From Convolutriloba macropyga (Eukaryota), in assembly GCF_964194025.1 (NCBI RefSeq), contig NC_134470.1, positions 32,488,001 through 32,552,000 of the forward strand: a stretch of DNA of 64,000 bases, in the 5' to 3' direction. Below, piece by piece: positions 5,245 to 47,407 of this stretch. The position numbers were made by a program, and so were the translations under genes. A model generated the notes under the pieces. The model was not told the origin of the DNA. It saw nothing but the letters and a program-made list of their open reading frames with translations, and ran no database searches. The stretch's first letter is position 1; each line of letters starts with the position of its first letter.

Positions 5245-5784
5245 TTGAAAACTAGTACACGGGCAGTTGTGGACTTTCAAAATGATAGGAGCGTAGTCCA
5301 GAGTCCCCAAAAATTGAATATACGAGATAGGTTTCAAGTTCTATTGAGGGGTTGTGAAGTAGACTTCTGCTGGGAAACAACGGGGGTTCTTGAAATTAGT
5401 GAACCAAGCAAGACTAGAGCTGACTATGTTCAAGTCCCTGATAACTGCCGATCAATGGTTGCAGTGGTACATCAAGGGAGCAGTTTAGGTGAATGCAGAT
5501 TACAAGTGCTGTCCTTAGCTAGTGCCGCTGAGTTCGAATGGGAAAACACATCAGAGATTCCTATCGAGGGTTTATGTGTAGCGGTTTCCAGCAGAGAGCG
5601 GGATCAACTCTCCATTTCTATAGAAGTAGTGGAAGTAATTGAAGTTTGTTCAGTTAATGACACAGCGAAAACAGCTTTTCACAATAAGGTAGTGATAGAG
5701 GCATGCAAGCCTCATTTGAGGAACGCCAAGAACTACAGAGGAGTTATAATCGTACATTGGGTCTTGAGAACCAGTCGTGCTTAA
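5245..5784 (+). pseudogene. Possible degenerate retroviral protease C-terminus and post-protease region
   Basis: LNIRDRFQVLLRGCEVDF resembles a decayed ILGxDFL...VDF motif, followed by VQVP beta-rich sequence. No DTG/DSG found. Confidence 0.3.
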
Positions 5785-11587: not shown

Positions 11588-12601
11588 GTTGGCTTCTGTC
11601 TTTTAAAAATGTGGGGAAAATTTGTAGAATTCAGTGTCTTTACTCATTCCTAAAGTTATGAAAGATCAGTTAAATAAATCGTTCAACGAAGGATCTGAAA
11701 TCTTTCGTGATAAAATTGGACTGATTAGTGCCAATGGCACAATTGTTAACGGTCATTTGAAAATCGACACCAAAAATCCAATATTTTTGCATTGCAACAT
11801 TGTCCATTTGAGTAATTCTTGCAAAATGAGAACAGAAACCAGCAACATTGAATTGAGTACGTAAGAAACGTTGTCAGGTCATTTTCTACCAAACAAAATG
11901 TCTTTTGATTATATACGGAAATATAATTTGCATAGCAAAGAAGGGCGCGCAAAAGGAGGGCGCGTTTCAGTAAGGAAGGTGAGATATAGTATGATTTAGA
12001 ATGGATGGGGCTATCATTTTGGGAGTACTAAATCCTCCTAATTTAAGTTAATTCAATTTAGTTCAATTTCATTAAGTTTTAGTTCCATTTTTAGTCATTT
12101 CCTGTTTGAAGATCAAATCTTCATTATTTCATGCTTGTTCAATTTGTTTACATATTTTACTGAAATCATTGTCTGTTCATGTCGTCTAGTAATTCGGTTT
12201 CCGGCAATTTGTAAAGTTTAGTTATGATCAAATTGTTGATCACATTCAGTTAATTTTAATTTCATCATTCATCTCAATTCTGTATTCAAGTTTAGTTGCA
12301 TCTCCTTTAATCCGAAATTTGTACTGCGAATCGCTTAAGTATACAATTCTACTCAAAGTCTAATTTTGCTTAGCGAAATACTAGATTAAAAAGTAAAGCT
12401 AAATTCGCATCGCCAAATACACATAAATTTAGCACTCAGAAATCTGAATCTTCTGAATACAAAATTAATAGCGAATTCGCTCCACGAAATAGCCAATAAT
12501 AAAAAATCTCAAGCTGAATAACAAATCCGCGAAATAGCTGAATAACAAATCTCTAAATTTGGCACCTCTGAATTCATTCTGAATAATGTAACGAAGTCTG
12601 T

Positions 12602-14156: not shown

Positions 14157-16067
14157 GCGAAAAAAATTGGAGGTTAATAAAAAAATGAAACATAAAAGGA
14201 TCGCAGATGATGTCAGTGCCGTTTCATCCATCCACTCAAACGTGACGAGAGCGTTGCCAGTACGAATGCCTGTAAAACCAAAGAAAACTTTAGTACCCGC
14301 ACCGCCATAGGCACCATCTGAAAACGTAACTGAATTCGCGCCAACAAAGGAGCTTCCACTTTCATCTATTGTAATCGCAGAGCCACCATCGAGACCAAAG
14401 AGGAAAGCAGCAACAAAGGCAACAGAGGCTTTCCAGCCAATACCGAAAAGAAAAAGATCCTCCCCGTCAATTACAGAATCTCACGAGTTTTTAGCTTCAA
14501 TTCAGACATCCACCGACAACATGCTCATCTTCTGCACCTTCGCGACACAAACGACGACAATTAATCAAACAAACGCAAATACAAAACAAGTCAATTGTCT
14601 CAAAATTTCAAAAAACTGCAGCCAAAAGTCAAAATGTAGAGTCTGACTATACAGTAGGTCCGTGTTCTCCAGTACAAACCTACCCGACTCAATACTACAT
14701 TTCACCAAATTACGAGGGACCAGAAATGTCTATGACAGTTGGTGAAGCGGAAAGGTTATAAGAAAGTGATTCTGATTAAAACTTTCATAAACATTACAGT
14801 ATTATTTATAGTAACCAGCAGTCATGTTATTAATTTCTTGATAAACTATTTCGTCGTTTATTTTGTCGAGGGAGAAATGTGATATAGCATGATTTAGTAT
14901 GGATGAGGCTATCATTTTGGGAGTACTAAATCCTCCTAATTTAATTTAATTTAAATTATTTCAATTTCATTAACTTTTAGTTCCATTTTTAGTCATTTCC
15001 TGTTTGACGATCAAATCTTCATTATTTCATGCTTGTTGAATTTGTTTACATATCTTACTGAAACCATTTTCTGTTCATGTCGTCTAGTAATTCGGTTTGC
15101 CGCAATTTGTAAAGTTTACTTATGATCAAATTGTTGATCACATTCAGTTAATTTTAATTTCATCATTCATCTCAATTCTGTATTTAGGTTCAGTTGCATC
15201 TCTTTTAATCAAAAATTCGTACTGCAGATCGCTTAAGTAGACAATTCTACTCAAAGTCTAATTTCGCTATGCGAAATACTAGTTTAAAAAGTAAAGCTAA
15301 ATTCGCGTCGCCAAATACACATAAATTTAGCACTCAGAAAAGTGAATCTTCTGAATACAAAATTAATAGCGAATTCGCTCCGCGAAATAGCCAATTACTT
15401 CTGAATAACAAATCTCTAAATTTGGCACCGCTGAATTCATTCTGAATACAGTAACGAAATCTGTATGACAGAAGGCTTTCTGAAAAACCAATAGATAAGT
15501 CACGAGTTTTCTAAAATGGTCAAATACGGTACTTTGTCCAATCCGCTGCGAAAAATGGGCAAATAATCGGCAAACGCTGGTGTTGCTGTTTAAATATCTG
15601 AGAGTATTTGCGTGCTAATTTTTGTGGATAAAAACTAACCAACCCGATATTTACAGTTTGCAATTCTGCATTTTATTGCACAAGAAACTAAACCAGTTAT
15701 TACACACGCGAAAATGTAGTTTTAACCGGGAATAAATACAGGATTGAAGAAAAAACACGTGATTGAAAAAGATATGACATGCAAATTAAACTGACACACA
15801 GCACCTAACTTTAGGAGAGTGTGGGATGGTTCGACCATCAGCTGCCAGAAAGCAATATCTGCATTGTTGGATAACAACCCAGTTATAAACAACAATTTCC
15901 ATTGTAGAGAAAACATTGATCGTTAGTTCTGTTGTTTATGGTTTAGGAGCCGTAATACCTAATCAACTCTTGCGTGGGATAAACTGTCCAATCTGAATAG
16001 TAGAAAGAAGTGGAAGTGTACATCAAAAAATACAGTACTCGGGTCGAGGTTTTTACCCAAAAATACC

Positions 16068-16550
16068 GGGGAAAAGAGTGTAAAGAGTGTAAAAATAAAA
16101 AAATTCCCCCCTATTTCTCCGCTTAATTAAGGGTGGAAGAGTGGAATTGAAAGAGTGGAATTTTAAAAATTTAGAGTGGAAAGAGTGGAAAAATAATTAT
16201 TTCCACTGTTAAAAATTACACTTAATTTTTATTTTTACACTCTTATAATTTCACTCTTAAAATTATTTGTACACTCTTCCACCCTTATTAAAAAAATTCC
16301 ACTCTTTGAATTACACTCTTCCACCCTTAATTAAGCGGAGAAATAGGGGGGGAATTTTTTTATTTTTACACTCTTTACACTCTTTTCCCCAGTTCATAGC
16401 GCCGGAATTAAAGTGGAAATATTTTATTTTTACACTCTTTACACTCTTTTCCCCGTAAAATATATCGGAATAAAGGTGGAATTAATTCACTATTACACTC
16501 TTTCCACGCAAGCCAGAACAAAGGTGGAATTTTTTTATTTTTACACTCTT
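16068..16550. repeat. Left subterminal repeat region, including palindrome 16068-16390
   Basis: Many AAGAGTG(T/G)AA / TT(A/C)CACTCTT motifs; ~80-bp near-perfect inverted arms. Confidence 0.85.
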
Positions 16551-16857
16551 AAATGCACCAACCTAGAAAGCAGCTCCATAATGAAGATGAAGAGCAGAGG
16601 GTTCGACAACTCCACAAAGTCCGAATATTTAAAGTCTTTTTAGCACTGTGAGCTGCATGAAGATCTCAACAATAATAGGAAAACAACTTTTTTGCTTGAA
16701 AGCAAATTTTATCAAGGAGTTTCCCTACCAATGTTGAGAAAAAAGTGCACCTCTAAAGAGCTAAGACTTTTTAAATAACACATATAAGCAAGCTGAAACC
16801 AACATAAGCATATCATCACATCATAAGCATAGACAAACTCAAACCAAAAAGCAACCG

Positions 16858-17000
16858 AAGCGAGAGACGAGCGTCAGACGAACAAGACGAGCGAGAGACG
16901 AGCGAGAGACGAGCGAAAGACGAGCGAGAGACGAGCGAGAGACGAGCGAGAGACGAGCGAGAGACGAGCGAAAGACGAGCGAGAGACGAGCGAGAGAGCG
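16858..17000. repeat. 11-bp minisatellite (GCGAGAGACGA)n
   Basis: Direct reading, about 12 units. Confidence 0.95.
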
Positions 17001-19142: not shown

Positions 19143-19163
19143 CACACATATAATCGTACATGC

Positions 19164-19164
<1 letters not shown>

Positions 19165-19213
<49 letters not shown>
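19165..19213. repeat. (TA)n microsatellite
   Basis: Direct reading. Confidence 0.95.
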
Positions 19214-19216
<3 letters not shown>

Positions 19217-19488
19217 ATAAGTTTGCGTAATTAAGAATAAAAAGAATCCGGAACATAGATCTACATTATTCGAAAGTATCGGGCAAATTAAATCGAAAAG
19301 GGACACAAACAGCAGAAATTTATACAACTGAATGAACAAAGAAATCACATTTTGAACTAGTTTCTCATAATAAATAATAAATTTCAGTACTAAAAAGTAA
19401 TTTTTTTTCTGAAAAAAAATCAGCGCTAGGAGACAGTTCAAAGATAAATACTGATTGAAGTCTGAAGTTATTCAAGTTCAACTCAACA

Positions 19489-22400
19489 TTAGTCATGCTC
19501 GAAATGTGTGAGCACATGAATGAAGTATAAGTTGTCGAGAAACAAAAATGGAATAAGTTTGCTATCTATTAAACTGCACATCAAAACTCGAACTTCTGAG
19601 GACTTCTCGACAAGATAACCAAGAGGCTTAAAGTTGATTTTACGTTCACGAAAATCAGTTGACGAAAGATCCAAAACTATTTTGTCAACAACGTCATAGA
19701 GCTGAACAGCGCACATAAACACTGAATCTTGCTCAATGAATAACAAGATCTGGCCTACCAAAATTTCGTTCTCCGAAGAAAAAGAAACAAAACTGTTTGA
19801 TTCAGATCTTGTGTATAATTGGCTGTCCAGATTAAAATTGCCTTGATATCTGCAGAACAACCGGGGTCCGGGAAACTTGCTTTGAAAATTTTTGTACACT
19901 TCGTTTTGCTTCATAGAATATTCCTCCTTCAAGCTGCTTTGTTTGCCCCTCAACGTCTCCAAAAATCCTGCTAAATTATCATCTTTCACCTCCAAGGCAT
20001 CAAAGTGTCTGTTCCGAATGTATCATTTGACAATGAGGCTGCACGTATTGACAGTGCCAGTTAAGTTAAGGTCCTGATAAGATGATTATTGGCACTTTCG
20101 AACATTGTTGCTGACGTAGTCCACAGGGGTCCAAAAAACTTGCATTGCCATGCTAAATGTCGAAGCAGATGGAAATTAATGGAGTCGAATTTCTTTAAGG
20201 GATAACGAAGGGACATTGTAGCAGAAAGCTTCTAAAAGGTAACCACAAAACTCTGCCTCGGCTTCACTTTCGTACATAGAGCGGAGGGAGAAGACCAAGT
20301 AATTGAGACTTTGCAGATTCGACTGATGCGCCACGGAGCTTTCTGGATATGTTTGGAACACAATTGGCGCAAAGTAAAGCAGGAAAGTTTTCAGTTCTTT
20401 AGCTTTGAAGTACTCGCGTGATCTCAATGATCTAATCGATCTCTTGAATTCGTTTGGTAAGACAACTTGTTTTGTGGCGCCATCAATTATTTATAATTCG
20501 ACGGAGCTCAGCTGTTCAGCAAAAAAGTTGATCAAGTCATTCGCAACTCCTTTGAGACATTGGTGCATTGTATCAACGGGACAAGTCAACGGGAGATTTG
20601 GAATTACTTTGAACAGATATGAGCGCCCCTTCACTCCAAGCGTATCGACCTCTGGATCTTTCTCCTTTCTACTTTTCCTCTCTTCTACACTCCCACTCTC
20701 AAATTGTCTTACAAGGTACTCGTGCATCCCAGGATCACGCATTGTAAAAGTTTCATTGTTCGGATACGAGCGACTACCTGGATATTTTTGCACGCCTCGC
20801 ATGGTACACAAACCGCATCCATAGTGTCCGTCGAACTTTTTCATTTTTACGTCATGCTTGCAAACAAGATCCAGTATCACAAAAACAGTTGTAAACTTCA
20901 GTTCGTATTCCACCCCATTCACTTTAATCTTCCTGTTTTTCGATATTTCAGAAGAATAGTGCTCAAATATCGAATCCCAGTGTATACTTCCTTTGCCATA
21001 CCACAAGGAACACAGAAAAATATTATCAAATGAAGCTCGTAGTTTCGGTGGTAGGTCAGCCAGAGCAACCCAAACAGGATAAGCCGAGCAGTCACTGGAC
21101 TCTTGCACCCGAACTCCATCTGTATTGAGAATAAGCTTGAAAGTGACTGTATTTCCATCGAACAAATCTGCGAGCTTCAGATCTGTTTTGGTATCTGGAT
21201 TAGCATAGGCTAAAATTTCATTTATGTACTTTTCAATTTTTTCCTGAATTTTATCAGCAAAACTCAGAAAAATAGCTTCCCCACTGCCGTTAGCCTCTGT
21301 CCCTTTGATGTATCGGTCAGTTAATTTCCTTGTTTCATTTTTTATGAAATTGGGGGCCGGTAAATTGTCTTGCGGATGAAGTATTTTTTGCCACCTCAGG
21401 AGGTCATACAAAGCTTCGTCAGGTAAACAATGCCTTGCAACAATTCCAAACAAAGCCATTGATGCATTATGAGCAGTGACATTTTGATTGCAACTCAGAG
21501 GGGCTGACGAGAAAGAAAATTCGACTTCCTGGTCCTGCTCGGTTTCTTCACCCTCGTCACTTGATTCTTCTTCGGACTGCGATTATGGAACTGAAGTGGC
21601 ATCTTGAGTAGAAATGTCAGACTCAAATTCATTACTATGTAGAGTTGCACGCTCATCCGTTCTCTCTATCTTGTCACCAAGCGAAATTTCTAACTCCGAA
21701 GATCTGCTAGAATCTACTTGATGAATGAATGCCCGAATTTGTCGACTTGATGAATCGTCAACCAGTCTTCTCTTCACTTTCCGTTTTCATTGACTTGAAT
21801 TTCGTCTTTTTCTGTCAGCTTGAGAAATGATAGGGGTCGCGGAACTTGATTGACTTGCTGAATACTGTGATCCAGTAATTGATGATTCTGTCGATTGGGA
21901 AAGACTGATTGGAATCTGGGGCGTAAAAGACTCTTGAGGATTTTCCTGCATCAAACTTTCGTGTTTTTCTGTATGTGGGCATCTACATTTTAGCCGACCA
22001 TCTTTGAAGTAATTTGAACCGTAACTTACGGTGATTTCTTCATAGGGCTATACTGAAGTTATTACTTTAAGGAAAACGCATTTGTTATGCGGAAGGAAGG
22101 GGCTGGTGTAACCAAGAAAAAATTGTGTGTTAGGAGAGCAGGAGTGATTGGCGAAACGAATCGGGCCGAGTAGGACTTGTTCATCGGCGTCCAACTCACC
22201 CCGCATGACTGAAAGATCGGACATTTCGTTTTGAAGCTCGGCAGGGACGCTTTTGACAGGGCCGACAGGAAATGGCCTAAGGGGTTCAAGTGATGGCTTC
22301 AAAACCCGGCCTGTATGATTAAATATTCCAAAGCCTCCAAATTTGTCCGGTAAGATCTTGAAACCAGATTGATCACACTGCTCATAAAGGTCTTTCAGCG

Positions 22401-22560
22401 AATAATACACTTTCATAAGCTTTTTGTCAAACTTCAGACAATTTTCAAATTCCTCGAAACTGTTTAAAGGCAGCATTGACTCAAGAGATACATCCAAATC
22501 TTTGAGCAATTGACGAACCACTTGCCCATCCGCAATAACTAGGTCTTCACAATTAATCAT
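19489..22560 (-). pseudogene. SET domain (Suv4-20-like) - linker - EnSpm/CACTA DDE transposase fusion, ~1020 aa when restored
   Basis: ORFs with upper coordinates 22740, 21777, 21459 and 20427 share one frame, separated only by single stops (22048, 21787, 21583, 20491). Frameshifts at ~20215 and ~20065 (TTAAC duplication); stop at 20023. SET motifs: GFGIF, DLSVM, LGPIRFANHSCSPN, EEITVSYG, CRC. Transposase motifs: LNTDG, DLPP..R, YGCGLC, GVKG, VDTMH, FKAKE, NFHLLRHL..GPLW..S..FES. Confidence 0.85.
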
Positions 22561-22991
22561 AATTCTGCAAAAATTGGGAAACGATTTAGAAACGAGTTGC
22601 TTTAAAAAGAAAAACTCATAAACCCGGTGAATAAAAAAACAAGGTAAAAAATCAAACATTGCCTTGGTTTTTAGGTGAATATCAGTTTCTTGAAGAAAAA
22701 ACAGCCTTTTAATAGTTGAATTACCTGAACGGTTACACATATAAAAAATTTGGATTGCAGAACTGATTAACGTTAAAACATGAAAATAAAATAAAACTCA
22801 TTGAACAAGCAATCAAAATTGTACTATAAAATATACAACTAAACGTGATCTGAGGCATAAAACTGAGACGAAGAGCAAACAAGTATATATACTGATCAGT
22901 TTATCACAAACAATTACTAATCTGTAAAGGTGTTCTCAAAAGTCGAAGAAAGTAAAACTTTCAGTTAGATTTTGAAGTTCAAACTATCTCT

Positions 22992-24593
22992 TCAGTTGGA
23001 CTCACTCACTGTTGAGCCACCACCCCTTTTTCTACAGTCCTTTCCATACTGATTTGCCGCTTTTCTCGCCTCCTCGCATGCCAGGTTCGGGGTATCAGGG
23101 TAATTCTGCTTCACGACATCTAAATGCAAAAAAAAACTTCTAAATGCGATTTATTAGTCATGCTGCTTTATTAAAAGTTACGGTTTTTCTCTCGTTTTCG
23201 AGCTTTAGCATCTCAGATTGAAAGTCAAAGTGAAAAAATTTCAAGGCGGGAAAAGTGAACAAGTTTCAACAAAACCAAAATAATTACAAAGGTTCTTACT
23301 CATAAACTTCTCCAGAAGGTTTTGAGGAGCTGCCGTCCTACCGTCATCCTCCCTCCGTCTAGGCGCAAGAATGAAGTTCCCACGATAACTTTCGCTGAAA
23401 AGCTTGTCATGAAGTGCCCTAGCCAGCTTTCCAACATCGACCCTGCATGTATGGACATCAGGTCTTCGCCCTCGTGGAGAATTACTTTGCTATGTGTAGC
23501 TCGTGAAGGGTGTTCGTCTACACTACGGAAGCCATGCACGTCCACGAAACGGACTTCCTTCAGCTCAGCAGTCTAAAAAAGTGCCTATATCGCAAAACTG
23601 TAGCAAAAACCTACATCTATCAGATGAGGAAAAGTGAAACAAAAAACTCCTTTCAAATATTCAGTTTCTGATGACAACGGTATAAAAGAAATGGAGAGCA
23701 AGCTTACTTTCTGATCGATTCTAGAGCACAGATTTGTCCGATTTGTTTCCTCTTTCTTCTTTTGCTCTTCAAAAGCTTTTCGCAGTGCGTCCATCGCTAG
23801 GGCATAAGAGTTCAAGAACTCATTGAGCAGCGGGCACTTTGGACCACATTCAGGGTTGTCCTCGTTTCGCGCTGTATTGTCAAAAGTAAGACTAGGTTGA
23901 ATCGAAGAGCATGGCTGCGTGAAGACCTCTTGTTCATCCTGGATACAAAAAAAACCAAATTGGCCTACTCGTCAATTAAAATAGAATGAACCAGCTAGTG
24001 AACTTTGCAAAATTTACATTTTTTGTTGCCTGAAACCTTTTCAATTTGTACTGATTGAAAAATACCTGTTCAAGAATCTGGCTTTGGTTGACCACTGGTT
24101 GCTGACTTGAGCTTGCTTTCAATTTCTTGGCTTTCCCACTTTCCTTGCCCATTGTAATCGCCGTGCTCGTCATATTCGGTGCACGAGATGAGCTCAAAAA
24201 GTCAACTTCTTCTACCAACGGAGATTTCGATGCTGTCAGAATTGTAGTCTTCAGACCCGAAGGCCGTTTTCCCGAGTCCATCTCTGCTTGCTAACTCAAC
24301 ATCGCCCGTTCTACATACTTCAAATTCCCTTTGGTCAAAAGGCGACAGGGATATATTTCTTCCTTCCTCCTCAAGTCATAGCTCTGACCCTCAATAATGC
24401 TCAATTTTTGCGACGGTTTGAGCTTTTCAGGCCACTTTGTGCTATTTAGACTTAGAAGTATTAACTCTTTGTCCACAAAGAGCCAGGCCATATTGTTCGA
24501 CACAAGGTTTGCCTTGATTGCATTCTCTCTTTTGGCTTCTGAGTCGAAGTGAAGGTTTTTCTTTGCCTGCTCTTGACGCGATGTTCTTTTCAT
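22992..24593 (-). pseudogene. BEN-domain-like accessory gene A (exons 24593-24066, 23938-23708, 23572-23300, 23119-22992)
   Basis: GT-AG introns with compatible phases. One stop (24291) and one 1-nt frameshift (~23440). Coiled coil, then KLARALHDKLFSE...GRTAAP..LEKFMNVVKQNYP...EARKAANQYGKDCRKR. Confidence 0.65.
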
Positions 24594-24843
24594 TTCTAAC
24601 ACTCTGAAAAACTTCAATCGAATTGAGATAGGAAAAAAGAAGACATAGTAAAAAGCTTTAGAAATTCTTCCAAATCATCTTTTTTCTCTCTTCACTTTTG
24701 TCATATCTACCATTCCAATGCTTAATTTTCTCTCTTTCTTTTCTTGAAGAAAATCACTATTGGTAAACATAGTAAATTTCAGAGAACTTTATGAGGAAAA
24801 CAAACATTACTACTATCAATGTTGGAATACATTGTAAATCAAT

Positions 24844-24845
<2 letters not shown>

Positions 24846-24875
<30 letters not shown>
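24846..24875. repeat. (CT)n microsatellite
   Basis: Direct reading. Confidence 0.95.
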
Positions 24876-24876
<1 letters not shown>

Positions 24877-24989
24877 AACATCCTTAAATTTGATGAATGA
24901 AAAACTGCGCTTCGTCAGTATTGAACAAAATAAGCAACTAAAATTACTGCACCTTTCCAAAAAAAGAAAACTACTCTATACAAAATGAA

Positions 24990-37312: not shown

Positions 37313-38000
37313 TTTCCTTTGAACACTTTCCAATTTGACTTGCCCCAAGCTGATTTTTTTTGATAAAGTGCAAGTCGAGATTGAAAGTAAATTTTAGCAA
37401 GATTTCAAAACCCCAGGTTGGGGGGGTCGATTCTTTGCCCGATCATATAGAAAAATAGGATTTAAGATTTAAAATTTTCAATATTTTACAAATTTTGTCT
37501 CCTTTGAACACTTTCCAATCTGACTTACACCAAACTGATTTTTTTGATAAGGTGCAAGTGTAGATTGAAAGTAAATTTTAGCAAGAATTCAAAACACCAG
37601 ATTGGGTGGGTCGATTTTTTGCTCGATCATATAAAAAAATAGGATTTAAGATTAAAAATTTTCGATATTTTACAAATTTTGTCTCCTTTGAACACTTTCC
37701 AATTTGACTTACCCCAAACTGATTTTTTTGATAAGGTGCAAGTGTAGATTGCAAGTAAATTTTAGCAAGATTTCAAAACCCCAGTTTGGGGGGGTCGATT
37801 TTTTGCTCGATCATATAGAAAAATAGGATTTAAGATAAAAAATTTTCGATGTTTTTCAGATTTTGTCTCCTTTGAACACTTTCCAATTTGACTTACCCCA
37901 AACTGATTTTTTTTGATAAGGTGCACGTGTAGATTGAAAGTAAATTTTTGCAAGAATTGAAAACCCCAGGTTGGGGGGGTCGATTTTTTGCTCGATCATA
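37313..38000 (+). repeat. Tandem array, ~184-bp unit, ~4 copies
   Basis: CCTTTGAACACTTTCCAAT at about 37316, 37501, 37685 and 37869. Confidence 0.9.
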
Positions 38001-38029
38001 CAGTGAAATATTTTTTAAGAATAAAGTGT

Positions 38030-38480
38030 AGATCCTAAAAATAGGGGTGTAAGAGTGTAAAAATAATTGCTACTTAATTTAAGGGTGGAAAAAAGAGTGT
38101 AATCTTTTATCCATCCACCTTAAATTACGCTGTCTTAAAAATAGGGGTGTAAGAGTGTAAAAATAATTGATACTTAATATAAGGGTGGAAATAAGAGTGT
38201 AATCTTTTATCCGTCCACCTTAATTTACACTGTCTTAAAAATAAGGGTGTAAGAGTGTAAAAATAATTGATACTTAATATAAGGGTGGAAAAAAGAGTGT
38301 AATCTATTATAATTCCACCCTTAATTACACTCTTTACAAAGAGTGTAAAAAGAGTGGACAAAAGAGTGTAATTAAAGTGTAATTTTTTAAAATTACACTC
38401 TTCCACTCTTTTCCCCGATAAATAACAGTGGAAAACGGATTACACCCTAATCCCCGCTAATTAGGGGTGGAATAGGGGTG
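38030..38480. repeat. Right subterminal repeat region (three 100-bp units plus AAGAGTGTAA motifs)
   Basis: ATA(G/A)GGGTGTAAGAGTGTAA at 38041, 38141 and 38241; same motif as the left end. Confidence 0.85.
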
Positions 38481-39249
38481 AAACCTCGACCCGGGTAATG
38501 AAAGTGGTCCTGTTTGGTTTCTCGACGACAATTGACGACAATACATTGTCGGTTGAAGTAAAAAAAAACAAAAGGTTCTGCGGTGTGATTTTATCAGCGA
38601 AACTTTAAATGAATATTGGAATTTATAAAAAGAAATTAGCAGTGAACTTCTCTCTGGTACTAGCCGCAATAAACGATATTTTCATGATTTAAAAAGGCAG
38701 ACGGTGATGGACTTCAGATACCAGATCAGCCAGCAAAATCAAGGCCAAATTAAATTGCATATTTATAGTAGCATATGTCCAGTGAGCGAAGCCAGAATCA
38801 TAAAATTCAATGTTACCACTTTATGCACATATGGAATGAACTTTATCCTTTATCATGCTACCGAATTCATTAGACAAGGACATCTACACTCATCCAAACT
38901 CAAATAATTGAGAATAAGGATAGAGCTTGAGAATAGACAAAATCAACAGCTAAATTCAAATTTGGATAACTTAATCTAATATACAAAGCTCATTAAATTG
39001 TAAATTTTCTCGAGTGGTACGTTAATTTGGTGGGGTGTCCTGTGTCCGTACATCTGTTTACTGATTAGACAGTTTAACTTTGCTATGACATCATACAGTT
39101 TTTAATTGCCTATGTTCGGATATTTTGCACTGAATTTAATAATTAATGTAAAAAATGCAGTTCAAATGTCAGTTATACAAAACCTCGACACTTGTGAGAA
39201 AAAAAAAGTTTATAAAAAGAAATCACTTATAATTGACATTTTTGCATAG

Positions 39250-41704: not shown

Positions 41705-44700
41705 ATGGTTTTTACTAGAACTGGAAAATCCACAGGAAGTAACAACCAAACAATGATCTCCTCAAATTCGCAGACACAATACTCAGACGACAACACCGAA
41801 AGTCAAGAGCAGGTCTCTGAAGATCCCCATTTAAAACGTCTGACCAACTTAAAGTTGATGTACGAAAGTGAAATCGAGTCGTGCATCGAATTTATTACAT
41901 CTGGCATCGACTGCGGCGAGGACTCAGAGACAGTCGAGGAAACTCTCCTTGAAATCAAGGAACTTCAGGAGAAGTACGAACTTACAATTCATGAACTTTT
42001 AGACAAAGCACCATCATCTGATGCAGAAAATTTATGCTCTCATTTGAGCAAACTCAAATTCAAGATACGGAAGATTACTTCCGCATACCGAAAATACAAA
42101 AAGGAACTTGTGTCCGCAACACAAAGCAACCAAACAAATAACATCCCGAGGGTGACCTTTGACAACAGCAGTTATCAAACTCATACTGAGGCATCTCTAA
42201 CGACCAACATTTTCTCAGCACCCGCTGAAAACAGTTCTTACAGTGAATCCTTCCTTAACAATGCTGCCCCCAGTAGCTTAATGGGAGATTCAAACACAAT
42301 TTTGCCGCCGGCAAATTTGTCGCAACAACTCACCACCACATCTGCTGACGTATCAGGCACCAGCACCATCAACAATGCCTTGTCTGGAGTTACCTCTGGT
42401 GGCTTCAATTCCACTTCCACAAAAATCGACGGCGCATTTCCCTCATTCGATGTTTCTCATCAGGCGGCCCAAACTTCTTCTTTAAATCCGCCAATCAGAA
42501 CTTCGCAACCATCCTCTACACTTCCAGCAGTTGGTATTGTGCCTCAGACTCTTACCTCAATGTCTTCTTGTTTTCAGAAATCGGTTCCGAAGTTACAGGC
42601 AACAAAGTTTGATGGAGATCCATTAAGTTGGTTAAAGTGGTTCAGTGTGTTTCAAGCAACAATTGATCGTTCTCCAATGTCCTCTGCAGAAAAAATGATT
42701 CATCTGCAATCGCTCCTGATTGGAGAAGCAAAAGCACTGGTTGACGGCTATGGCTGCAATGGCAGTCTGTACGCACCCGCTTTAGCACGTCTGGAAGAAC
42801 ATTTTGGTAATCCGAACAGGATTGTCAATGCCTTCCTCGAAAAAGTGTCACATTTTAGACCCCCTAACCTGACAATCCCAGACAGTTATACGCAGTTCTC
42901 TGCTTTCCTTTTAACCCTTGTGGACACATTTCAGCAACTTGGATTCAACCATGACATACATTCCACTACAAATGTCAATCAAGCCTTAAACAAGCTTCCA
43001 ACACCAGTCCGCTTGGAATGGAATAAGCACGTTTTGGAAAGAAGTTTACTTCAACCATCTCTGAAAGAGCTTTCGGAGTGGCTTCTGATCTATGCAAAGG
43101 CTTGCAGAGATTTACCCACCTCTTGTGCATCAGCTCAACCTCCAAGCACTCGTTCAAAGGCCTCTAATCATTTTTGGAAGCATTCGAATCAGCAAACCCA
43201 ATTCAACCGTCCGTCCAACAGATCTCACCAGGATCAACGCACAAACCCGTCAAATAGCTTTCAACCAAGCTCTGCGAAAGGTGTCGTTTGTCCAAACAAC
43301 GGTAGCTGTCAGTATTTATACAAATGTTCTCATTTCCAAGATCTGTTTCCACTCGATAGACGAGAACACGTGAAAAAATTGAAACTATGTTTCAACTGTT
43401 TTGGTAGTCACCATGTACAACAATGCACATCAAAAAATGTTTGTCGCTCTAGAGACTGCGGCGAAAAGCACCACACAATGCTCCATGAAAGCTTCATTGC
43501 AAAAAATCAAGCAATCCGACCCTCTTCAACAGTTAAATCGGTTCAACTGCATGGCACAGGTCAAGTTGCTTTCTTACCAGTTCAACTGTCTAACGGGGAG
43601 AAAACGTTTGAGACATATGCTTATCTTGACAACGGAAGTTGCCAGAGCCTCCTCCTCCAATCCGCAGCTCTGATTCTAGGTATTGATATGAACACTTTTG
43701 GCAAGATGCCTATTAGTGGCTACCACACAACAAAAGAAATAGATTGTTCTCCAATGTCTTTAAAAATTAAACCTTATCAGTCTAATAAGACACCAGTTCT
43801 CGTAAACGAAGTCTTGGCAGTACCCGATTTGAATATGAACCCTGTTAACACTAATGAGCTGAACAAGCTTTGCAAGAAATTTGAACATCTCAATCACATT
43901 TCGTTCCCTAATGTTGATGAAAATAAAGTTTCAATAATCATCGGCATCGACAATCTTCAACTGATCCATTACAGTAAGGTGATAAACGGCCCAAAAAACA
44001 CGCCCTGGGCTGTAGAAACTCCTCTAGGATGGACATGTGCAGGTAAAACTAGCGTCACAGCAGACGAACAGAATCCAGTGTTCAAAACACAAATCAACTC
44101 TCATCCTCATCTAGACAATGAACTTTTCACAAAAGTACAACAGTGGATGAAAATTGAGAACTACGGTATAGCTTCATCAAAAAGGGCTATGTCTAAATAT
44201 GATGAAAAAGCTCTGCAAATCCTTGAGTTGACTACAAACTTTTCTGATGGTCACCACGAAATAGGCCTTCTTTGGAAGGAAAACGCCAAGTTACCAAACA
44301 ACAGATGGCTACCAGAAAAACAGTTAAAGCAATTAAACAAAAAACTCTCAACAAAACCAGATCTACAAAGTAAGTACGAGGAGACGCTCCAGAAAGATCT
44401 TCAAAATGATTATGTTGTCAAAGTTGATCCAGCTACAGACAAAGAAACAGCATGTTCTTATCTTCTTCATCATCCCGTTTCAAATGAAAACAAACCCGGA
44501 AAAATCAGGAGAGTCACCAATGCATCCAGTGTTTTTCAAGGTCAATCCTTGAATTCAAACCTTTGGAGGGACCCGATTTGTTGAGTAATCTTGTGGGAGT
44601 CATATTGAGATTCCTCGAGCAACAAGTGGCAATTTCAGCAGACATTGAGCTAATGTTTATGCAAATTAAAGTTGCTCCCTCTGATCGTGCGTTTCTTCGG

Positions 44701-47407
44701 TTTCTCTGGAATCACAATGGCAAAATCGAAGAGTATCAATACACACGTCCTATCTTCGGCGCAACATCTTCCCCATGCATAGCGTCCTACGCTCTTCGTC
44801 GTTCGGCACGTGACAATCAAGACAAATTTCCTCAAGTTTTGGACGTCATTGAGCGTAATGTTTACATGGATGACCTATATATCTCGACAGCAGACGTTGA
44901 AATTGCTGTAAACGTTATGAACAGCACCAAAGAGTGTCTTTCACTTGGTGGTTTCAACCTCACAAAGTGGAACTCTAATTCAGACGAGTTCTTGAAAAAC
45001 GTCGCAAACGAAAATCTTTTGAAGCCTGATCTACCATCACCTCAACCTCAAAAAGTTTTGGGTTTACCGTGGAACGCGAGCACGGACGAGTACATCATTG
45101 ACAGAAGGCTTTTCAAAAGGTTCCCCAATGATCAATTCACAACACAGAGGAAACTTTTGAAGTTCGTCGCTTCATTTTTTGATCCCCTTGGCGTTATAGC
45201 CCCTATAACAATCAGAGTGAGGAAAATATTGCAAGCGATTTGGAATAAAGGTCCACAATGGGACGCACCTCTGGACGTTCAGCAGTTCTCAGACTTTCTC
45301 CAATTCAAAAACGAACTTCCAACTTATCAGAATATCAGCATTCCAAGTGCTCTCTTCCGTAGAAACACGAAAATTCAGTCAACAGCTCTTCACACGTTCA
45401 CAGACGCTTCAGAGTATGCTCTATCAGCAGTGTCTTGTCTAAGAACTGAGTATGTTGATAAAACAGTTGATGTAGTGTTCATGATGGGCAAAGCCAGAGT
45501 AGCTCCGATCAAGAGGATGACTATTCCAAACCTGGAGTTGCAAGCGGCAGTTTATGGCGCGCAATTAGCTCAGTTTATCAAAGAACAGCAAGATTTGGAA
45601 ATCGGAAATTACTTTTTCTGGTCCGATAGTACAACTGTACTCCATTGGTTGAGAACTCCAGAAATGCGGCATTGAATTTTCGTTGCCAATAGACTAGCAA
45701 AGATTCTCGACGCCTCTTCATCTCTCAATTGGCGCTACATCGCTTCTTCTGATAATCCCGCTGATGACGGCTCAAGAGGCTATGAGGTTCGACAGATGAA
45801 TGCAACTTCTCGTTGGTTGAGTGGACCATCATTTCTCCGCTCCGGAGAAAAAGAGTGGACTTGTCAAGATCTCTTGAAGCATAACCCACTGGTATTCTCA
45901 ATACAGCCAATGGAAGCCCCTAAACCGTCAACTGAAGGGTGTGTAATAGATATTACACGTTTTAGCAACTGGAATCGGTTGATAAGAGTGACTTCGTACT
46001 GCTTCTTTTTCCGCGACCTTTGCAAGAAGCTAAGCAAACATTTGGCTCTCTCTCATCATACTTTTGCGTACAGGTATCTGATCCAGGTATCGCAGATTGA
46101 AAATTTTGCAGACGAAATGTCTGCTCTACGTAAGGGAAAGGAAATTTCAGCATCAAGTCGTTTGAAAGACCTTTGTCCGTATGTTGAAAATAATGATCAG
46201 CTCCGCCCCAAAGGTCGGTTGTCCAAGGCAATGGTTTTGGAGACTGCCCGACACCCAATCATTCTGGATGGTCTAAACAGAAATTGTGAAGCTGCTCATC
46301 AAAAATTTTCACCTTACTAACACTCACTCAGGAGTTGAACAAACCCGCTGCCTCCTTATGCAATACTTTTGGATTTTGAAATGCCGAGCTGTCGTTAGGC
46401 AGACAGTCCGCCAATGCATTCCTTGTCGGCGAATGATACAGGAAATCCAGCAACCTCAAATGTCTGATCTACCATGCGAGCGGTTACCAAGTGAGCACCA
46501 CTTTGTCTTTGCGACGACAGGACTCGACTTCATAGGTCCTTTCCCCGTATCTCAATGCGGCAGACACGCTACACGCTACGTACTTCTGTTCACCTGCTTG
46601 GTGGTAAGAGCAGTTCACTTGGAGATAGCAGAAAACCTGTCTACAGATTCAACAATGAATTGCATCCGCAGATTCATTAGTCGCCGCGGAAAGCCAAAAA
46701 CATTTCTCTCCGACAACGGGAAAACTTTTGTCAGCTCTTGTTCGGGACTAAAGAAAGGTATCGAAGCACTCAGAGCATCAAAAGAATTTGCCTCAAAACT
46801 CCATATTCTTGATATTGAAATTGAATGGAAGTTTAATCCTCCCCTTGCACCACATTTTGGTGGCAGTTGGGAAAGGTTAATTCAGGTGTTCAAACTGTCT
46901 TTGCACAAGGTCATTGGATCAAGAACACTAACACATGAAACGTTGTCTACCTTCACTTGCGAAATAGAATCTAACATGAACTCTCGTCCCCTCACATACA
47001 CTTCGAGTGACATTAATGATCCACTTCCCCTAACACCAAACCATTTCCTTTTGGGCAGACCCACTGTTAATTTTCCACCTGGTGTTTTTTCCGAGAGAAA
47101 GATTACAATCTCAAAGTCTTGGAGAACTTCACAACACTTGGCCGAACACTTCTGGAACAGATTTCTTAGAGAATATATCCCAAACCAGCAGAAACGTTCG
47201 AAATGGACTAAAGGTTGTCCGAATTTACAAGTAGGCGATCTAGTTTGGGTTTTAGAGGATTTCACGCCTCGAGGTCTTTGGCCACTGGCCAAAGTCATTG
47301 AAGTATATCCTAGTTCGGACCAAATTGTCAGATCCGTTAAACTAAAAACCGCATTTGGGGAAAAAATTCGCCCTGTTGTTAAATTAAGCAAAGTTCTAGC
47401 TGACTAA
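41705..47407 (+). pseudogene. gag-pol: BEL/Pao Gag-Pol polyprotein (DUF1759-type gag, Zn knuckles, protease LDNGS, RT YMDD, Pao RNase H, integrase)
   Basis: FDGDPLSWLKW, CFNCFGSHH, LDNGSCQS, NVYMDD, FTDASEYA, GLDFIGP, SDNG, GGSWERL. Broken by frameshifts at ~44565 and ~46280 and a TGA at 45673. Confidence 0.95.

Follow-up and report, generated by a model that had tools for sequence, protein, structure and literature searches.

A predicted KMT5B/C-type SET domain joined in frame to a CMC transposase in a recurrent transposon family found in Convolutriloba macropyga

Introduction

Can a transposon carry a histone-methyltransferase domain inside its own transposase? The question is raised by a 64,000-nt stretch of the Convolutriloba macropyga genome (NCBI RefSeq assembly GCF_964194025.1, contig NC_134470.1, positions 32,488,001 to 32,552,000), referred to below as the window. 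The minus strand of the window carries, at 19489-22560, a decayed gene in which a SET domain is followed by a transposase. A sequence-only reading, made without database searches, had proposed that a Suv4-20-like SET domain is fused here in frame to an EnSpm/CACTA transposase and had asked whether the two parts stand side by side at this locus only. They do not. The order recurs in many copies, and the fusion is found as uninterrupted open reading frames (ORFs) of ~1,000 amino acids (aa) in several assemblies. The fusion is thus real and recurrent, and selection has maintained it within a transposon family. As a whole, the locus is likely to represent a dead ~22-kb copy of a CMC/Mirage-like element whose KMT5B/C-transposase polypeptide would write methyl marks on lysine 20 of histone H4 (H4K20).

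Results and Discussion

Layout and decay of the window gene

All coordinates refer to the whole window, and the motif positions were taken from a single-frame translation of 19489-22740. The gene was analysed as pieces and through natural intact paralogues. The following features were assigned.

19489..22560, minus strand: SET-transposase fusion pseudogene of ~1,020 codons with five stops and two frameshifts
21973..22560, minus strand: KMT5B/C (Suv4-20)-type module comprising N-terminal helical domain, SET and post-SET, interrupted by TAG 22048
22348-22368, minus strand: SGFKILP, SET motif
22321-22338, minus strand: GGFGIF, SET motif
22204-22221, minus strand: SDLSVM, SET motif
22138-22158, minus strand: RFANHSC, SET motif
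22018-22041, minus strand: EEITVSYG, SET motif
21973-21987, minus strand: CRCPH, post-SET
21490..21972, minus strand: Ser/acidic linker with the basic cluster KRKVKRR (21766-21786) and stops at 21787 and 21583
20064..21489, minus strand: CMC-type DDE transposase with residues invariant or nearly so across the family
21115-21126, minus strand: NTDG, transposase, catalytic D
20866-20877, minus strand: ILDL, transposase, catalytic D
20806-20817, minus strand: CGLC, transposase, C(2)C
20560-20577, minus strand: VDTMHQ, transposase
20157-20171, minus strand: HLLRH, transposase, H(3)H, shifted frame
20088-20102, minus strand: FESAN, transposase, catalytic E, shifted frame
19489..20063, minus strand: conserved C-terminal domain ending in HFEHD and a stop codon, aligned in all family members
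19492-19506, minus strand: HFEHD, C-terminal end

The predicted product begins with MINCEDL, passes from the N-terminal SET domain through the Ser/acidic linker into the DDE transposase and the C-terminal domain, and ends with HFEHD, which is followed by a stop codon. Every motif that the sequence-only reading had named, from MINCEDL onward, is present at the positions listed.

Alignment with four paralogous copies revealed five in-frame stops in the window gene. Three of them had been noticed before and explained as single C>T changes from sense codons. The four paralogues bear this out: 22048 TAG derives from CAG, 21787 TGA from CGA and 21583 TAA from CAA. At the same three positions the paralogue P0015, a single open ORF covering the C-terminal half of the SET domain, the linker and the N-terminus of the transposase, reads Q, R and Q. 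Two further stops, 20491 TAA (from GAA) and 20029 TGA (from CGA), had been overlooked. The earlier statement that the frame contains no intron or frameshift does not apply to the final third of the gene: 2 bp have been lost near 20217 and 5 bp duplicated near 20070, which places the HLLRH/FESAN segment (20064-20216) in another frame. An in-frame 3-bp deletion is located near 20849. With five stops and two frameshifts, the window copy is dead and has no function. A chance open frame is excluded by stop density and paralogues: at ~40% G+C, a stretch of ~690 codons interrupted by three stops only is far from the random expectation, and the paralogues of the gene pieces reach E values down to 1e-171.

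Splicing from the upstream ORF 22992-23129 into the SET ORF was considered and rejected, because the obvious donor does not match the acceptor in phase and because the intact relatives begin with a Met a few residues ahead of the conserved DGQV. Further copies of the gene pieces were not found within the 64-kb window by tblastn, and Rfam and tRNA scans of the window returned nothing.

Recurrence of the fusion in other copies and assemblies

The transposase piece retrieved 22 paralogous ORF fragments with 44-96% identity, all in one ENA assembly, and ORF fragments form clusters of 20-66 near-identical members. The paralogue L010, which shares 77% nucleotide identity with the window, extends over 1,026 codons in one frame with two stops only. 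The 170-aa SET piece, used as a single-sequence query against 1.84 billion representative proteins, gave 97 matches. The long ones (908-1108 aa) carry an N-terminal SET domain with transposase motifs behind it, and no match of at least 900 aa lacks these motifs. The architecture is shared by at least 15 intact proteins (908-1116 aa) drawn from four assemblies or read sets. In these 15 proteins the SET domain lies near residue 130-150, the first catalytic D near 440-565 and the catalytic E near 770-915, and most of them end in an HFEHD-like C-terminus. The full-length matches originate from the ENA assemblies ERZ25071359 and ERZ25071366, from the NCBI assembly GCA_013332895.1 and from Logan assemblies of four SRA runs. 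A word-indexed search with the full-length P0037 added just two more relatives. The architecture is unchanged among families that share 25-46% identity.

A fusion protein of 1035 aa is encoded by four copies on four contigs that differ at 2-10 residues, and one of 995 aa by two copies that are one residue apart. Such near-identical copies show that some families were recently active with the fusion ORF intact.

All long matches of the SET search are fusions except P0116 and P0134, proteins of 895-896 aa from a JGI metagenome. They carry a SET domain with RFVNHDC, as in host KMT5, and have no transposase motifs. Three contigs of ~3.3-3.7 kb that carry P0081 were considered as possible transcripts and rejected, as they show tandem subterminal repeats at their ends and no poly(A).

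Identity of the SET module

Taken alone, the SET piece of the window is marginal: a single-sequence search against the PDB gave an E value of ~0.03, and among the seven window pieces scanned the Pfam SET score reached 19.5 bits, below the cut-off of 22.4. The SET domain was therefore classified from a family profile and from relatives. The profile, an alignment of 15 family sequences, was searched against all PDB sequences. Its ten best matches were all SUV420H1 or SUV420H2 (KMT5B/C), with 80-86 bits and E values of 2e-23 to 1e-21. The next SET families in the same search (KMT2C/D, ASH1L and NSD) followed at ~37 bits and E 1e-8. The alignment to SUV420H1/H2 spans the motifs D.S(V/I)M, LGP..F.NH.C.PN and YG..FFG..N..C.C. 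Sequence identity to the solved structures is ~20%.

The AF2 model of the L010 SET module has a mean predicted local distance difference test (pLDDT) score of 82.8. In a Foldseek search with this model, the top 15 hits were all SUV420H1/H2, with a query template-modelling (TM) score (TMq) of 0.60-0.71 over 214-259 columns. The match covers the full L010 module, including the family-specific N-terminal helical domain. The remaining SET domains fit only the core, with TM of 0.35-0.43. By profile and by predicted fold, the module is well supported as a KMT5B/C (Suv4-20)-type SET domain, as the sequence-only reading had suggested.

The SET domain retains the motifs for S-adenosylmethionine binding (GxG-type loop, NHxC) and the E-E-x-x-x-Y motif with the catalytic tyrosine: G76, N138 and C141 of NHxC and Y180 are invariant in the 15 sequences, as is S117 of the S-V-M motif. 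In the candidate zinc cluster of the post-SET segment (CxCxxC together with the Cys of NHxC), C192 and C194 are invariant as well. The third ligand is a cysteine in one clade (C.C..C) and apparently a histidine in the clade of the window (CRCPH).

Identity of the transposase

None of the seven window pieces matched a Pfam transposase family, so the transposase was assigned through its intact relatives. DUF1258 (PF06869) was detected above its cut-off of 33.1 bits in P0117 (51.2 bits), P0067 (45.0 bits) and P0136 (40.4 bits), and at 21-33 bits in other members. P0136, a relative that has no SET domain, passes the cut-offs of both DUF1258 and Transposase_21 with ~40 bits each. DUF1258 corresponds to the Mirage group and is closely related to Transposase_21, the family of CACTA (PMC3985635). 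Among the family members the motifs NTDG, (V/I)(A/L)DL, C..C, H...H and FES(A)N show little or no variation; such motifs are the signature of the EnSpm-Mirage-Chapaev-Transib group (PMC12730594). An AF2 model of the transposase core (pLDDT 75) matched best, in Foldseek, the RAG1 core, the amphioxus RAG-like transposase BbRAGL and HzTransib, with E values down to 3e-10 and TMq of ~0.5, in line with an RNase H-like core of RAG1/Transib-type architecture.

Judged from these sequence and fold matches, the transposase belongs to the CMC (CACTA-Mirage-Chapaev) group of cut-and-paste elements, is nearest to Mirage and is not a canonical EnSpm/CACTA enzyme. The label EnSpm/CACTA, given by the sequence-only reading, is not supported in the strict sense: Transposase_21 scored 15-24 bits in every scanned fusion protein, below its cut-off of 28.6, the termini of the element are not CACTA, and the candidate target-site duplication is 2 bp and not 3.

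Selection and shared history of the two parts

Pairwise identities were calculated for 16 sequences, namely the 15 full-length proteins and L010 with its two stops as X; L010 entered the trees in the same form. Mean pairwise identity is 38.8% for the SET part, 43.8% for the transposase core and 24.2% for the linker, which is the least conserved region, of low complexity and ~150-350 aa long. The ratio of non-synonymous to synonymous substitution rates (dN/dS) was determined for P0067 and P0123, two intact proteins of the same genome. SET gave 0.13, the linker 0.37 and the transposase together with the C-terminus 0.17. Few changes underlie these values, in SET 8 synonymous and 4 non-synonymous ones, and trees and dN/dS both come from few sequences. 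The SET part is under purifying selection and is as strongly constrained as the transposase.

The maximum-likelihood trees of SET and transposase show an identical main split with 100% support. Inside one clade both trees give the same topology, and the other clade is poorly resolved in both. The agreement of the two trees points to a single old fusion followed by joint divergence.

Proposed function of the fusion protein

Host KMT5B and KMT5C convert H4K20me1 into H4K20me2 and H4K20me3. They are recruited to chromatin via regions outside the catalytic module; PMC10697951 gives structural details. H4K20me2 is read by 53BP1 and ORC1.

We propose that an active member of the family would produce a single polypeptide of ~1,000 aa, in which a KMT5B/C module is connected by a flexible Ser/acidic linker to a RAG1-like DDE core and a C-terminal domain. 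The DNA-binding parts of the transposase would stand in for the heterochromatin-targeting tail of the host enzyme and would deliver the methyltransferase to nucleosomes at the element ends or at the site of excision or integration. H4K20me1 present there would be converted to H4K20me2/3. The active copies are likely to be catalytic, since the catalytic and cofactor residues are invariant and dN/dS is as low in SET as in the transposase. Methylation of H4K20 at the element's own ends or target sites, as the sequence-only reading had imagined, is plausible. The most likely benefit would be local control of break repair or of chromatin state during transposition. How it might pay off is a guess: 53BP1 could affect the choice of repair pathway, ORC1 could affect origins or the timing of replication, or heterochromatin could form locally.

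Several points weigh against this proposal. In one clade the histidine of NH(S/D)C is replaced by serine (RF.NSDC), a change with a possible effect on the binding of the cofactor. Full nucleosome activity of SUV420H1 needs the C-terminal arginine anchors R352 and R357 (PMC10697951). No equivalent of these anchors was identified in the transposon proteins, in which the conserved basic cluster of the linker is the sole candidate. The SUV420H1 residues that contact the H4 tail after S-V-M, Y254, S255 and T256 (PMC10697951), are not conserved, and the window family has R-G-E at this place. The full-length proteins are prokaryote-style gene calls on genomic contigs, and the single chain is a prediction. 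Methyltransferase activity, substrate and effect on transposition are all inferred from sequence. Finally, the pairing of the element termini described below, which rests on an inverted repeat of 13-15 bp and a 2-bp TA, is the least secure part of the reconstruction, since the gene-upstream terminus was observed in no copy other than that of the window.

The SET domain could instead have been kept as a docking device that binds the H4 tail and the nucleosome surface and, without enzymatic activity, tethers the transpososome to particular chromatin for integration. The chromodomain of chromovirus integrases, which tethers them to H3K9-methylated chromatin, offers a parallel. The clade with serine in the NH motif, in which the domain is still constrained, fits this explanation, and cryo-EM work (PDB 8t9f) reports non-catalytic roles of SUV420H1 on nucleosomes. 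However, invariance of the catalytic tyrosine (VxYG), of Asn and Cys in NHxC and of Ser in S-V-M across 15 diverged sequences is to be expected of an active enzyme, and we regard the docking device as unlikely, although it is the most probable of the alternatives.

The substrate could also be a protein other than a histone, either the transposase itself or a host repair factor. This would agree with the divergence of the H4-contacting residues after S-V-M from SUV420H1 and with the fact that no homologue of the arginine anchor has been demonstrated; SETMAR/Metnase is regulated by automethylation (PMC2566874). Retention of the whole KMT5B/C fold together with its N-terminal helical domain (TM 0.60-0.71) and a profile score 45 bits better for KMT5B/C than for any other SET family argue for the histone substrate, and a non-histone one is improbable.

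Equally improbable is that SET and transposase are separate products that arise through splicing in the linker, internal initiation or proteolysis, with the common ORF being just a compact arrangement. The linker is long, poorly conserved and of low complexity, the SET and transposase ORFs of L002 lie in different frames, and elements of the En/Spm type make two proteins per transcription unit. The frame is open across the linker in 15 of the 15 intact proteins, though; the linker dN/dS of 0.37 is below 1, and the simplest explanation for the frame change in L002 is a lesion acquired during decay. It is hardly credible that a host KMT5 exon stands by chance beside a transposase remnant at this locus only, or that the gene is a domesticated single-copy host fusion like SETMAR. 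Nothing was found in favour of either, and both are contradicted by the many, mostly decayed copies with SET-linker-transposase order, defined termini and unrelated flanks, and by the architecture shared by families at 25-46% identity.

The proposal of an H4K20-writing fusion protein can be extended. Active members may be self-mobilising histone writers that place H4K20me2/3 on the nucleosomes of their own 170-185-bp satellite and on excision and insertion sites, and that in this way steer break repair, replication timing or both to their own advantage. We consider this extension doubtful, a little more so than the docking explanation.

Ends and internal organisation of the element

A generic search for terminal repeats was swamped by satellites. 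The ends were found by reading the outer edges of the element and by comparing copies. The features outside the fusion gene are as follows.

16036..16037: candidate target-site duplication TA, left, directly outside the terminus; weak, being 2 bp in AT-rich DNA
16038..16052, plus strand: terminal inverted repeat CTCGGGTCGAGGTTT with the 13-mer, end downstream of the genes; common to L008, L009 and L010
16053..16555: subterminal foldback with repeated ACACTCTT-type motifs, inverted repeats I1-I5; kept after the satellite in L009 and L010
17104..19105: internal satellite array of 174/185-bp units (360-bp dimer), detected with TRF
22998..26513, minus strand: accessory coding blocks upstream of the fusion gene; tblastx conservation with L010, L002 and L003
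27184..33875: internal satellite array of the same 174/360-bp family, 6.7 kb, detected with TRF
36134..38331: tandem arrays of 178 bp, 184 bp and 100 bp adjoining the upstream terminus, detected with TRF
38481..38495, minus strand: terminal inverted repeat CCCGGGTCGAGGTTT, end upstream of the genes; pairs with 16038..16052
38496..38497: candidate target-site duplication TA, right, directly outside the terminus

The termini read CCCGGGTCGAGG and begin with CCCGGG, not CA. In CMC elements the termini are mostly 5'-CA..TG-3', and the target-site duplication has 2-5 bp. The window contains two copies, and no more, of the 13-mer CGGGTCGAGGTTT; they lie outside the satellite arrays, at 16040 and 38493, and are inverted relative to each other. 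The downstream terminus is common to the window, L008, L009 and L010; homology ends two bases beyond the motif, and the flanks are unrelated. Inverted termini with TA on both sides indicate that the element most likely spans 16038-38495, ~22.4 kb, with 15-bp terminal inverted repeats. The target duplication is probably the 2-bp TA, seen in one case. Subterminal motifs matching those of the downstream end lie inverted at 38040-38268, and the 100-bp units of the array at 36134..38331 share the subterminal motifs of 16229-16551, again inverted. The upstream end of the intact L011/L012 element was not located within a 10-kb flank. In L010 a second terminus of the gene-downstream type lies at 12141-12153 on the plus strand, past the end of L010 and in opposite orientation, which suggests two elements tail to tail.

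The 8-kb core at 19159-27160 is 88-96% identical in L001, L008 and L009 and is bordered by satellite arrays on both sides. The window satellite is also found behind the transposase gene in L001, L009, L010 and L002, and the arrays upstream of the genes also in L001, L008 and L009. The kilobase arrays inside the element, on both sides of the genes, have units of 168-185 bp, close to the repeat length of one nucleosome, and dimers of 337-360 bp. Besides the window, they were observed in L002 (10856-13197), L003 (2785-3787), L011 (14441-20083) and L012 (14443-18381). The arrays that adjoin the fusion gene in other families and in another assembly share a similar period and are unrelated in sequence. 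An 11-bp microsatellite AGCGAGAGACG with ~13 copies (16859-16997) is also located inside the element; together with a (TA)n tract at 19169-19220 it brackets the downstream satellite array.

The accessory blocks probably belong to a second, multi-exon gene. Neither a Pfam family nor an annotated protein matched them, and only paralogues in the same genome were found. Two motifs, GF.SVDE.P and YP.TP.LA...A..AANQ.G, are each repeated twice in them. Corresponding blocks were observed in L010 (1-2800), L002 (3300-6300) and the NCBI contig L003 (8800-10950). In L003 they are downstream of the fusion gene, whereas they are upstream of it in the window.

An ORF resembling GDSL/SGNH hydrolases accompanies the fusion gene in two distant families (L003 11668-12333; L013 1503-2000; L014 1860-2357). 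These ORFs are 26-27% identical (tblastn E 3e-8 and 8e-11) and score 23.7 bits, below the cut-off, with Pfam Lipase_GDSL_2. No such ORF was found in the window's own family. A long ORF at the start of L013 and L014 was rejected as a repeat artefact, since four reading frames of L014 1-1850 are open, three forward and one reverse.

Two other parts of the window stand apart from the element. The coding region of a BEL/Pao long terminal repeat (LTR) retrotransposon is located at 41705-47407 on the plus strand, split over several ORFs, with the domains DUF1759, RVT_1, Peptidase_A17 (the Pao peptidase), Integrase_H2C2, rve and DUF5641; its presence points to an animal genome. The segment 2001-8000 shows a sustained positive GC skew of +0.28 to +0.33 at 38-42% G+C, unlike the remaining window. 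It contains no tandem repeat detected by TRF at a score of 200 or more, and its long ORF 5245-5784 has no Pfam match.

Relation to known systems and significance

With the host enzymes KMT5B/C the transposon protein shares the helical domain at the N-terminus, the core of the SET domain and the two invariant cysteines of the post-SET segment, as well as the motifs D.SVM, LGP..F.NH.C.PN and YG..FF...N..C.C. It differs in having a transposase in place of the C-terminal heterochromatin-targeting tail, and one transposon clade has NS(D/S)C instead of NH(S/D)C. SETMAR/Metnase is likewise one polypeptide that starts with SET and continues into a DDE transposase. However, SETMAR is a single-copy host gene of primates that arose by exon capture of a dead Hsmar1 mariner, and it contains a SET domain of another family (reported H3K36me2) and a Tc1/mariner transposase. 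The window family, in contrast, is a multi-copy, recently mobile CMC element with a KMT5-type SET domain, terminal repeats and unrelated flanks. Mirage and other CMC elements resemble it in DUF1258, which is above the cut-off in some members, in the RAG1/Transib-like fold, in subterminal repeats and in the short candidate duplication. The SET module, the CCCGGG termini, the kilobase satellite arrays and the accessory ORFs set the window family apart from them.

SET genes have been described in HarbingerS elements, Phytophthora MuDR, Helitrons and red-algal Plavaka (PAG2) (PMC12730594; bioRxiv 10.1101/2025.02.11.637652). These are likewise DNA transposons with an acquired SET histone methyltransferase. 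They belong to other transposon superfamilies and live in other hosts. Compared by their descriptions, they carry SET as a separate accessory gene, and no KMT5 type is reported for them; in the Plavaka elements of red algae SET is combined with a DNA methylase domain, outside the transposase polypeptide. The TET/JBP dioxygenases of fungal transposons (KDZ, Plavaka and others) and the VANDAL anti-silencing proteins are also epigenetic factors encoded by transposons, but they are separate proteins and act on DNA methylation, not on a histone mark.

The acquisition of SET methyltransferases by transposons is therefore already known, and the novelty assumed by the sequence-only reading is confined to the fusion. 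A full-text literature search, which did not extend to Repbase, Repbase Reports or Dfam, returned no description of a SET-CMC transposase fusion, including one with a Suv4-20-type domain, nor of a KMT5-type SET domain in any transposon. As far as checked, the in-frame fusion to the transposase, the assignment to the KMT5 family and the occurrence in a Mirage-like element are new.

Transposons are usually the targets of histone marks. In the known exceptions SET is a separate accessory gene or, in SETMAR, part of a host gene that took up a dead transposase. In the present mobile family, a predicted writer domain forms part of the transposase itself. Selection has kept the fusion through deep divergence, and the marks made by KMT5B/C are linked with heterochromatin, with repair that depends on 53BP1 and with the licensing of origins. 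The near-identical intact copies are natural proteins with which it can be tested whether the element sets a histone mark for its own breaks or its landing site. In chromatin research they might find use as compact H4K20 methyltransferases targeted to DNA. If the active members were indeed self-mobilising writers, the family would be a case of a transposon that programs a histone mark within its transposition cycle, on chromatin read by 53BP1 and ORC1.

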